A DNA stretch of 63,413 nucleotides, counting the filler, from Olpidium bornovanus S191 (taxonomy: Eukaryota; Fungi; Olpidiomycota), in assembly GCA_017911155.1 (NCBI GenBank). It is 27 parts of 27 records of this genome, joined end to end, with 100 filler letters (N's around TTAATTAATTAA, not from the genome) between each part and the next. Parts side by side here need not be neighbours in the genome. Positions count along the whole stretch, not along the records: positions 11,772 to 15,065 come from JAEFCI010003738.1; 26 more parts are not named here. One strand, 5' to 3'. The stretch's first letter is position 1. Each line of letters starts with the position of its first letter. The notes below the pieces were generated by a model, which ran no database searches, was not told the origin of the DNA, and saw nothing but the letters and a program-made list of their open reading frames with translations. This document shows positions 11,882 through 15,065 of this stretch, one piece after another. A program made the position numbers and the translations under genes.

Positions 11882-14800
11882 TCTGAGCGGTTGGACGGTG
11901 AAGCAGACAAACATGCCGTGCTCCGCACGAACGTTCTGGGAGTGGTCAACTTGGCGGACTGCTGCGCTATTCGCCGTCTGCATCTCACCAACTTCGTCTC
12001 TTGTAAGTAACCACGACGGACCCGACGGATGCTCTCGCTGTGGACTAAGCAGCAGCTGCCCGGATGATCCACGTCCCAGGCTCTGCGCACCATTGTGAAG
12101 AGGGACACGCGTGCGGCGTAGGCTTCGACGGAGCGGCGAAACTAAGTTTCGGCGCTTCCCACCACAGCTATTGTCAACAAATTACTGAATCGGTGGGCGA
12201 CCGCTTCCTTTGGAGACGCCAAACCGCGACGCGGCGGATTGCAGAACCGTCGCAAATCATTACAATCATACTTCGTTTCCGGTTTTCCAGCTGCTCAGGC
12301 ATTATGACAACGTCCTGCAACTTCGGCTGAGAATGCCGGTGCCGGATACCTTGGATCCCCAGAGCATTCTTGCACGGCTGGCGAAGTACGAAGTTGCTTG
12401 CTCTTTGATGCCGTTTGGCCTAACCGCTTAACGCGCGGTGGCTTTGGCGGCGGATTCTTCCTGCGGCCAGAGGATACTTGACCGCTCGCATTTCCAGCCT
12501 CTTTAACGCTTCTATTTCCTTTGCAGCTCGGAGGTGATCGCCAATATCCCGGTATCGCAATCAATACTGCACGAGCTGTTGCCTGCTGCTGTCAAGATGG
12601 CCGAGAACGGGATAACAGGGAGATTTGATTTCACCAACCCTGGAGTCATCGCACCCAAGACGGTCATTGCGCTTTACAAGAAATACATTGACCCCTCGTT
12701 TGCGGAACCGGTATTCATTGCGCACGACGGGACGACTGTCCAGAGAAGCAAGCAGTCAGACAGTCAGCTGGTGCGTCGGGGAGTGGGCGAAAGACCGCCC
12801 GGTAGGTTGGGACGTAGTCTGCTCCCTCGACTTTTTCGAGGGTGACAATGGTCCTTTTCCGTCGTATCGGAATTATCGCAGGATAGCCGAAAGCTGGCGG
12901 CGGTGCTCTCAAACCTGAACGTCACACTGCCGGAGGTTCACGAAGCATACGAGCGATATTTCAAGCGCATATCCGAGCAGCTGGCGGTTGAACTTCAGCG
13001 AAGAGCGTCGCTCAAAATCGTTGACCCCGAAGACTTCAACCGCTGGGTGTCGCAAGATGTGGGCAAGCGGATCGACGTGGTGCTGCCGGGCGTGAAAAAC
13101 ATACTGGTTACGGGAGGTGCCGGCTTCATGTGAGGATGCGGTTTATAGCTTTTGACGGTGCGCTGCCCAGCTTTCGGTTCTCTTTATACCCGTCCGCAAG
13201 TCTGTAATGCCGGCCATTTCTCCAGAGGCTCGTATCTCGTCCGGAAGCTCGTGCTGCTTTGTGGGTGCCGAGATTGATTTTTCACCTCGGTCCGAGTCTC
13301 AGCGGCCAGTGAAATATGCTGTAGCTAAGATTGTGTTTCCGAACCCACAGATCCGGAGTTCCGCGTTTTTAGCCTTGACAAACTCGATTACAGCGCTTCT
13401 CCCCGGAATACGGAATGTTTAGACGGATTACCGAATTACACGTTTATAAAGGTAGGGCAAAACTGCAGTACGCGTTTCCTCAGTTAAGCCGGGGTGCGCG
13501 GGAAAACATTAAAGACATAAGGCCTTTCTGCCAGGGAGACATCACATCGGCAGGTTTACTAAGTTCCGTTTTCAAGAACGAGAAGATTGACACAGTTATA
13601 CATTTTGCTGCTCACACCCACGTCGGTGGGGTTCTGTTTTGGATCTTGCTCTATTTCAGCCCGAGAACGTCTGTTTCTTCCATTTTCTGCCACCGCGGTT
13701 GAGAACTGCGAGGGCACTGCGCGCCGCGACCTGCAATGGAGAACAACTTGATAAACATAACCCTCCCGCTTCTAGACAATTCGTTCGGCAACTCGACTGA
13801 GTTTACGATGAACAACGTCCTCGGAACGCATCTCGTTCTGGAAACTTCCAGGGTTTACGGCATTCGTCGGCTTATTCACATCAGTACCGATGAGGTGTAC
13901 GGCGAAGTACACCATGCCGCAGTAAGTGGTTCTTTCTTCTTCTTTTTTCTGGTAAAAAATGCGTTTTTTGTTGGCTCTTTACAGTTTTGTGGGACATGTC
14001 CCGTGTTTGTTGTCGCCGCTTTCGGATGCTGACGCGGAAATCGGCCAAGTTAGACAGATGCGTGCGAGGAGTCCATTCTTGCGCCCACAAACCCGTATGC
14101 GGCGACGAAAGCCGCAGCGGAAATGATGGTGCTCGCATACTATGCGTCCTTCAACGTCCCGGCGATTATCACTCGGAGCAACAACGTGTACGGACCATAC
14201 CAGTTTCCGGAAAAGGTTATCCCCAAATTCATAAATCTTTTGGCCAGCCGGAAGAAATGGTATGTGCCTGGTATGTGCCTTTCTTCCTCTCCTAGCGCTC
14301 CTAAAATCTGCGCGGTTAATTCTTCCCCATTCCCCCCACCCGTACCCGCCGACGAATCACTCAAACCCTTTGTCGATTACGAAAACTTGAAATTCTGATC
14401 AAAAAAAAAATTAAACTGCCCGCAAAGAAGTTGCCTGCACGGCGACGGGTCGAACCTGCGCAGGTACATCTACGCCTCCGACGTCGCTGACGCGGTCGAC
14501 GTGATCCTGCATAACGGCCGGCTCGGCGAGACGTACAACATCGGGTCGCAATTCGAGATTTCAAACCGGCGGCTGGCGGAGATGCTAGTCGAGGAGATGG
14601 AGCTGGCGGCGGGGAACCTGGAGGACCGCATCGAGCATGTCGCCGACCGCCCGTACAACGACCGCCGTTACGCCATCGACAGCTCGAAGTTGGAGCAGCT
14701 CGGGTGGAAGGCCAAGGTGCCGTTCTCGGAGGGCATACGGCGGACGAGTACGTTGTGTGTACGCTTGTGGAGGGGGCTGGTGGAGTCGAACTTTTTTTTT

Positions 14801-15065
14801 TTCGTTTTTCGTTCGCGATTGCAAGAAAGCATGCCAGAAGAGTTGCCCATTCTCCAGCCACATTCTATCTGACCCGTCCTTCACCACCTCTCTCTCCCCC
14901 ACACACATGCACACACGCACACGCCCGCGCACGCGCGCGCGCGGCCCCACTCCCCACACCGTATTGCACACCGCGCAACACCAGTAAAATGGTATACCAA
15001 GTACGGTCTGACATGGTGGGGAGACGTCAGCGGTGCGCTCGTCCCACATCCGGCGGAAATCGCAG
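11882..15065 (+). CDS. Fusion protein: N-terminal NRS/ER-type 3,5-epimerase/4-reductase-like domain + C-terminal UDP-glucose 4,6-dehydratase (UDP-rhamnose pathway); both ends truncated
   Basis: ER-like exons 11882-12002, 12080-12192, 12291-12392, 12534-12770 read [14 protein letters not shown]; [16 protein letters not shown]; [17 protein letters not shown]...DFTNPGVI. Exon 12882-13129 runs without a stop from DSRKL...[15 protein letters not shown] into [11 protein letters not shown]. Dehydratase exons give [86 protein letters not shown]. Confidence 0.93.

Follow-up and report, generated by a model that had tools for sequence, protein, structure and literature searches.

A lineage-specific fusion of an epimerase/reductase-like domain to a downstream UDP-glucose 4,6-dehydratase in Olpidium bornovanus

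The fused gene and its transcripts

The analyzed window, a stretch of 63,413 nucleotides joined from 27 parts of the Olpidium bornovanus S191 assembly GCA_017911155.1, carries at positions 11772-15065 a fragment of one nucleotide-sugar gene, in which a domain of the UDP-4-keto-6-deoxyglucose epimerase/reductase type (ER) precedes a UDP-glucose 4,6-dehydratase domain (DH). This piece is the entire contig JAEFCI010003738.1 (3294 bp, 54% GC) of a fragmentary metagenome-assembled genome (MAG), thus the gene is truncated at both ends. The model is estimated to lack about 70-80 N-terminal residues (50-85 when judged by colinear homologs) and the last few C-terminal residues, the homologs extending approximately 7-20 residues past the cut in the last exon. 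NCBI lists the partial protein as 'MAG: hypothetical protein BJ554DRAFT_6428, partial [Olpidium bornovanus]', in agreement with an earlier note on this DNA that had assigned it to a zoosporic fungus.

The gene model was built from three-frame translation and splice-site inspection, and comprises 12 exons on the plus strand and 11 introns, all GT..AG and 77-237 nt long, which splice to 599 codons with zero stops. The ER-like domain is encoded by exon A (11882..12002; SERLDGEAD...NFVS), exon B (12080..12192), which holds its degenerate catalytic core, exon C (12291..12385), and exon D (12527..12770), which covers the substrate-binding half and is its best-conserved part. Exon E (12882..13129) joins the two domains in a single open frame, including the ER C-terminus (12882-12971, from DSRKL onward), a 41-aa linker (12972-13094), and the Rossmann start of the DH (13095-13129), and the Ile codon after it is completed across the following intron. 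The earlier note had described this exon as uninterrupted, with a linker of about 40 residues, and had argued that the fusion does not depend on a predicted splice; both statements are borne out by the single-exon frame. The NAD-binding part of the dehydratase is encoded by exons F, G, and H (13226-13260, 13351-13451, and 13535-13625), its catalytic core by exons I and J (13776-13921 and 14054-14259), and its substrate-binding half by exon K (14431..14747), whereas exon L (14985..15065) contains the C-terminal RHM/UG4,6-Dh signature and is truncated by the contig end. Because the model lacks an in-frame ATG from residue 134 to residue 361, the dehydratase is without a separate start codon and can be made only as the C-terminal portion of the fused frame. 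The last intron includes a low-complexity CA/CG-rich tract (cacacgcacacgc...gcgcgcgcg, 14882-14950), which was skipped as a repeat in read placement.

The contig piece is contained in 20 public sequencing runs. In seven presumed RNA runs (X1 and X3-X8), a fraction of 0.40-0.54 of the sampled words is present, as compared with an exon fraction of 0.55, and expression of the gene is seen across several independent studies; in the raw-read RNA runs X21 and X24, which share the species label of the transcript-containing runs (presumably that of a host plant), zero reads were placed on the gene. All 11 introns of the model are confirmed by Logan RNA contigs of X1 and X5, which represent two studies. 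In X5, a single contig of 1617 nt starts at exon B and extends past position 15065, with the introns on both sides of the junction exon spliced out and 12770|12882 joined in frame; the possibility of a chimera at this exon, considered in the earlier note, finds no sign in the RNA. Since this contig spans both halves, ER and DH are located on one spliced RNA. Upstream of position 11881, a 241-nt loose RNA end from X1 represents an RNA-only exon whose last codons read PTLVFNCAGV, as expected if the NRS/ER domain continues upstream (compare PTHVFNAAGV in the Arabidopsis NRS/ER structure 4QQR).

These transcripts bear on whether the architecture is an artefact, that is, a chimeric contig, a contaminant of the MAG, or an internal section of a tandem (DH-ER)n gene. 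The MAG is indeed fragmentary, the gene is cut by contig ends, and a tandem DH-ER-ER protein exists elsewhere (contig L002, see below); however, the junction exon and its flanking splices are reproduced by RNA contigs from different studies, both halves are fungal, and the upstream RNA amounts to only 241 nt, which would be mostly or wholly taken up by the missing ER N-terminus. Residues 8-597 of the model align to P0181 (615 aa, 38% identity, 405 bits) and P0204 (611 aa, 39% identity), and the fact that these colinear homologs terminate directly behind the DH argues that the piece covers almost the complete architecture and not the interior of a tandem. We thus regard an artefact as highly improbable.

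Several transcript forms break the reading frame. Use of acceptor 12168 instead of the productive 12080, at about equal depth, shortens exon B by 88 nt and places a stop at residue 62, and another alternative acceptor at 12887, 5 nt downstream of 12882, leads to a stop at residue 226 and is the form assembled in X1 (depth 60), with the 12882 form assembled in X5; Logan contigs drop minority forms, and these depths are not isoform ratios. In addition, intron 2 (12193-12290) is retained in one contig, with a stop at residue 124, and a minor alternative donor at 14758, which differs by 11 nt from 14747, gives a stop at residue 577. A rescue of the frame by joint use of both alternative acceptors (88 + 5 = 93 nt) was considered and rejected, as the stop at residue 62 remains. 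The competing splice sites may reflect regulated unproductive splicing or noise. Two sites differ between the assembly and the RNA strain, and both are non-synonymous (F64C on the ER side, V370L on the DH side), although so few sites prove nothing. The frame-breaking forms and the retained intron at depths comparable to that of the productive form, the two replacements, and the long branches of both halves described below are what would be expected of a decaying gene in an obligate biotroph, with the whole locus being lost and mis-spliced transcripts being noise. However, the 599 codons in 12 exons have stayed free of stops, expression recurs across several independent studies, and the dehydratase half keeps 89% of the fungal-invariant positions and every catalytic motif, its changes being mostly conservative; we consider decay of the locus unlikely.

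Reversed domain order in Olpidium and in giant viruses

Database searches used single exons or relatives as queries. In PDB, exon D (12528-12770) matches the Arabidopsis NRS/ER (4QQR, E 3.6e-14) and mimivirus L780 (7JID, E 1.6e-07); by these matches, and by its position next to a fungal NRS/ER in the tree described below, the ER half has the homology and fold of an RmlD-like short-chain dehydrogenase/reductase (SDR) of the NRS/ER type. Pfam gave no match to the single ER exons because they are too short and divergent. The exons downstream of the junction match PF16363 (GDP_Man_Dehyd) and PF01370 at profile positions 59-332, of which exon K covers positions 215-332 of PF16363. The DH half retains the GxxGxxG, the catalytic S/T-D-E, and the YxxxK of the extended SDRs in intact motifs, namely GGAGFIGS (13113-13232), STDEVYG (13883-13903), and YAATK (14096-14110), contains RSNNVYGP (14174-14197), and ends with the C-terminal signature of RHM and UG4,6-Dh proteins. 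Judged from these motifs, the C-terminal half is predicted to be a competent NAD-dependent 4,6-dehydratase that makes UDP-4-keto-6-deoxyglucose (U4k6dG). The protein would then consist of a U4k6dG-epimerase/reductase of the NRS/ER type, the 41-aa linker, and a UDP-glucose 4,6-dehydratase (UG4,6-Dh) of the TGDS/RHM-N type, in this order.

In plant RHM1/MUM4, the dehydratase is N-terminal and the epimerase-reductase is C-terminal. The plant proteins RHM1, RHM2 (MUM4), and RHM3 resemble the Olpidium protein in having a DH and an NRS/ER-type domain on one polypeptide, and the Olpidium DH is approximately 53% identical to that of the plant-like RHM P0030, with the same C-terminal signature. However, the RHM-type matches have the DH at residues 7-355 and the ER at about 450-680, so that the order in Olpidium is reversed; moreover, the Olpidium protein combines intact DH motifs with an ER that lacks catalytic residues, whereas a trifunctional RHM-type synthase requires two catalytically complete domains, and the fungal descent of its halves marks a separate fusion event.

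An HMMER search with exon D against 1.84 billion representatives returned no full-length ER-first fusion among the best 150 matches, the long ones having the plant order. A local domain scan identified two fragments among these matches, P0143 and P0118, that carry ER and then DH in one open reading frame (ORF) and stem from eukaryotic metagenome contigs with introns (on one of them, L007, an RmlC-like gene lies immediately upstream), and a metagenome scan with the junction exon found standalone ER genes only. With P0143 as the query, approximately 100 proteins of 600-629 aa were found that cover it colinearly, and local domain mapping assigned 102 proteins to the ER-DH order (84 of them of at least 560 aa) versus 12 to the DH-ER order. 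The typical full-length ER-DH protein has about 610-630 aa, with the ER at about 2-285 and the DH at about 305-625. The Olpidium protein is colinear with this family, its residues 14-573 aligning to positions 83-623 of dozens of proteins of about 620 aa.

Most of the full-length ER-DH proteins come from giant-virus MAGs, and there are also intron-bearing versions from protists. For example, one ER-DH protein is encoded on a 406-kb contig together with Evr1_Alr, DUF5760, and many ORFans, and P0195, which is UniRef entry A0A6C0DJB1 ('viral metagenome'), matches a GVMAG contig of IMG/VR at 100% identity, and a full colinear ER-DH match was obtained at about 26 further IMG/VR loci. The ESM Atlas contains 47 clusters of the ER-DH type that are 95-100% viral, with Nucleocytoviricota as the commonest phylum. 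Giant-virus proteins such as P0195 share the ER-linker-DH order with Olpidium over approximately 560 colinear residues at 35-39% identity; however, their linker is about 20 aa as compared with 41 aa, and their ER halves, unlike that of Olpidium, retain TGC, YxxxK, ITK, IPNS, and RSNN.

Database pipelines label ER-DH proteins as 'dTDP-glucose 4,6-dehydratase', and many of them carry this label only. The publications searched describe RHM, RmlC-RmlD, the rhizarian RmlC-NRS/ER fusion, and RML-5, and no description of the ER-DH order was found among them, nor one of this large giant-virus family, which marks a gap in the literature. The suggestion of the earlier note that the order had not been described therefore stands with respect to these publications, but the order as such is no peculiarity of Olpidium, being abundant in giant-virus MAGs and occurring in some protists. 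In the DH tree as well as in the ER tree, two proteins with the DH-then-ER order, P0293 and P0278, nest in the giant-virus ER-then-DH clade; therefore, the domain order seems to have been flipped within giant viruses too.

Fungal descent of both halves

In the smaller of the reconstructed DH trees, and only there, Olpidium forms a sister pair (support 95) with the standalone DH encoded on the environmental contig L013, within a eukaryotic clade, and the giant-virus ER-DH proteins constitute a separate clade (support 100). Approximately unbiased (AU) tests, in which the groups were named after the tree had been obtained, rejected a single clade of Olpidium with the giant-virus ER-DH set (p 2.4e-05) as well as a clade of Olpidium with P0181 and P0204 (p 4.9e-06), so that colinearity with the giant-virus family is not matched by common descent. 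When named fungal dehydratases were added, which were standalone proteins of 364-449 aa from many Dikarya, from the chytrids Boothiomyces and Globomyces, and from the aphelid Paraphelidium, Olpidium was placed in the fungal UG4,6-Dh clade (support 100/98; 28 fungal and environmental rows), with all other members as its sister group. The ER tree unites Olpidium with the Erysiphe NRS/ER and the environmental proteins P0152 and P0151 (support 95*), which supports the assignment of this half to the fungal NRS/ER type made in the earlier note; the Olpidium terminal branch is 2.1 versus 0.16-0.2 in the sisters. The closest ER is P0152 from contig L013, tied with P0151 from contig L014, and the C-terminal ER signature is common to Olpidium and P0152.

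Filamentous fungi such as Magnaporthe and Botrytis have a two-gene pathway of UG4,6-Dh and U4k6dG-ER (Martinez et al., 2012, as cited in PMC8092308 and PMC12488480). Both Olpidium halves fall in the clades of these enzymes, and Olpidium differs by the fusion and by its degenerate ER. Among the 120 closest fungal DH relatives there is no ER-DH fusion: 119 are proteins of 334-465 aa, and the remaining one, of 640 aa, contains an extra COQ7-type family and no ER domain, so this set gives no support to the alternative considered in the earlier note, in which early-diverging fungi would commonly share the order. Because the halves lie in fungal clades, their nearest kin are separate genes, and the AU tests reject a grouping with other ER-DH proteins, the Olpidium fusion is fungal in both halves and independent of those proteins, as had been proposed from the sequence initially; we further conclude that giant viruses and some protists evolved the ER-then-DH order separately. 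Thus, the steps of UDP-rhamnose synthesis have been fused repeatedly and in both orders, as DH-ER in plants and algae and as ER-DH in giant viruses, some protists, and a fungus.

The contig L013, a 2.3-kb environmental sequence with 38% GC, carries intron-less and separate ER and DH genes (65-2261) arranged head to head, 40 nt apart. The UG4,6-Dh gene on the minus strand encodes a protein of 404 aa with 67-73% identity to proteins of aphelids and chytrids, and the gene on the plus strand encodes the intact NRS/ER P0152 (314 aa). This pair suggests that NRS/ER is present outside Dikarya, and the Olpidium gene adds an NRS/ER-type sequence in a zoosporic fungus, as compared with the report of a phylogenomic survey that the NRS/ER clade is Dikarya-specific (PMC8092308). 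Since the nearest kin are an unfused ER/DH pair, the simplest history would be that such a pair became co-oriented and was fused in the Olpidium lineage, the likely source being neighboring, separately transcribed genes like those on this sister contig.

The degenerate ER-like half and related arrangements

Residues of the ER half were numbered via the alignment of the sister protein P0152 to 4QQR and 7JID. In the numbering of the Arabidopsis NRS/ER, the catalytic residues are replaced as C115S, Y144H, K148Q, and K183R. The equivalents of C115 and K183 in L780 are Cys108 and Lys175, which are catalytic by mutagenesis according to a review (PMC9614988). As compared with its NRS/ER relatives in the alignment, the Olpidium domain has SERLD---GE in place of the conserved TGRPNVDWCE in exon A, SCS in place of TGC across the A/B exon junction (11996-12093), HHSYCQ in place of FYSKTK in exon B (12160-12177), and LAR in place of ITK in exon C, where the lysine is an arginine within ILARLA (12366-12383); furthermore, IPNS is changed to IPVS and RSNN to KQSD. 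The canonical catalytic residues, including the Cys and Lys for epimerization and the Tyr-x-x-x-Lys for reduction, are thus lost from this half.

The loss extends beyond the active site. Of the columns invariant in fungi, the ER half retains 43/84 (51%) and the DH half 108/122 (89%), and leave-one-out retention of the fungal relatives at the 90% threshold is at least 0.88. When the reference is the set of 84 full-length ER-DH proteins and a column conservation of 90% or more is required, the values are 26/63 for the ER and 70/76 for the DH, and the other ER-DH members retain a median of 0.98 of the ER columns, with a minimum of 0.58. The substitutions in the Olpidium DH relative to fungal relatives are mostly conservative. 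The idea that the fusion implies rhamnose synthesis, put forward in the earlier note, is not supported by an ER half that has lost the equivalents of Cys115, Tyr144, Lys148, and Lys183 along with half of the fungal-invariant positions. This calls for caution in annotation, as the architecture alone predicts a rhamnose synthase, whereas the residues indicate a dead reductase half.

We favor, with a probability of roughly 0.6 and on the strength of sequence comparison, a lineage-specific ER-DH fusion that combines a working dehydratase with a pseudo-enzyme ER domain. The N-terminal half would keep the SDR fold without its acid/base and reductase residues, and because these residues are lost, the Olpidium protein alone probably does not make UDP-rhamnose. 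The ER-like half might serve as a leader, as a dimerization or scaffold module, or as a module that binds the product. Two known systems provide partial models for such an arrangement. RML-5 of C. elegans, composed of an rmlB-like and an rmlD-like part with non-conserved catalytic residues, has been proposed as a scaffold for RML-4 (PMC9741107), and by this description it offers an earlier example of a rhamnose-pathway protein with two domains and degenerate catalytic residues. Vertebrate TGDS, reported to make small amounts of UDP-4-keto-6-deoxyglucose that rescue UXS1 (PMC12488480), is a standalone dehydratase of the same family without a partner ER and may serve as an analogy for a DH joined to a dead ER; the UG46DH of Botrytis complements TGDS-knockout cells (PMC12488480).

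Several observations weigh against the preferred reading. In Botrytis, absence of the ER has been reported to cause accumulation of UDP-4-keto-6-deoxyglucose, a toxic compound that damages the cell wall (PMC5698552). The abundance of frame-breaking isoforms, with the 12887 acceptor as the assembled form of X1 and the 12168 acceptor at a depth equal to that of the in-frame form, is a pattern that a gene in the process of being lost could show as well. The DH half is fast-evolving as well (terminal branch 1.75 versus a median of 0.21), therefore part of the ER divergence may reflect a genome-wide acceleration. The contig starts downstream of the ER N-terminus, the site of the NAD(P)H-binding motif, of which the RNA shows only the final 10 residues (PTLVFNCAGV), and a second, intact ER may be encoded elsewhere in the fragmentary genome. 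Finally, the canonical Cys site is immediately preceded by a Cys, and a Tyr is found 2 positions past the canonical Tyr site, and because of this proximity the ER active site could have shifted.

Such a shift would allow a fully functional one-chain UDP-rhamnose synthase of reversed order, with an ER that works through shifted or non-canonical residues. Its substrate-binding half is conserved, and replacement of Lys by Arg is tolerated in some reductase-like domains of the rhamnose pathway, such as those of P0143 and P0181 and, as reported, of the TvRmlCD proteins (PMC9741107); however, four catalytic positions are altered together with TGRPNVDWCE, IPNS, and RSNN, and 51% retention of the invariant columns is far below that of every other family member. 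The ER frame (786 nt) is open in just 1 of 20000 shuffles, which would also speak for function, but an open frame is needed merely for translation of the DH and its openness is therefore explained without ER function. In sum of these points, a functional synthase appears distinctly unlikely.

The preferred reading, a working dehydratase with a pseudo-enzyme partner, can be taken further, although as a tentative proposal that we hold to be unlikely in its full form. The dead ER-like domain would be a functional pseudo-enzyme that binds or buffers the reactive and antifungal UDP-4-keto-6-deoxyglucose or gates the DH, the pathway would end at this sugar as in the TGDS system, and ER-DH fusions would have arisen at least three times. 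If at least three separate ER-DH fusions had indeed occurred, tethering would matter more than domain order. The choice among these explanations bears on whether Olpidium, a root-infecting vector of plant viruses, makes rhamnose glycans or the keto-sugar intermediate only.

Further arrangements of these domains were observed in the course of the searches. On contig L007 (7482-10227), and also on L008 and L009, an RmlC-like cupin (PF00908), an ER-like domain with Cys replaced by Gly and a YxxxR motif, and a DH follow each other on one strand, and fragments of 593-607 aa (P0183-P0190) unite all three Pfam families in one protein. This arrangement is possibly a C-ER-B triple fusion and may extend the rhizarian RmlC-NRS/ER fusion of Wagstaff et al., 2019 (PMC6556577). 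In the representative library, the second-best match to the Olpidium ER exon lies on the metatranscriptome contig L002 (3-2129), where a single frame contains the C-terminus of a DH and then two successive ER domains (DH-ER-ER). Other ER-containing proteins include P0120 (524 aa), in which the ER is joined to a multi-pass membrane, transporter-like C-terminus, P0029 and P0081, with repeat-rich C-termini, and P0003 (1980 aa), with eight ER-like stretches.

The genome of the chytrid Boothiomyces sp. JEL0838 (GCA_027604245.1) contains a sugar-nucleotide cluster (L057, 4434-13039) that encodes a DegT-type aminotransferase, UG4,6-Dh, a 411-aa fusion of RmlC- and RmlD-like domains, a 710-aa transporter of the TPT family, and a weak GT8 match. 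Here the same dehydratase leads into another route, one of bacterial style.

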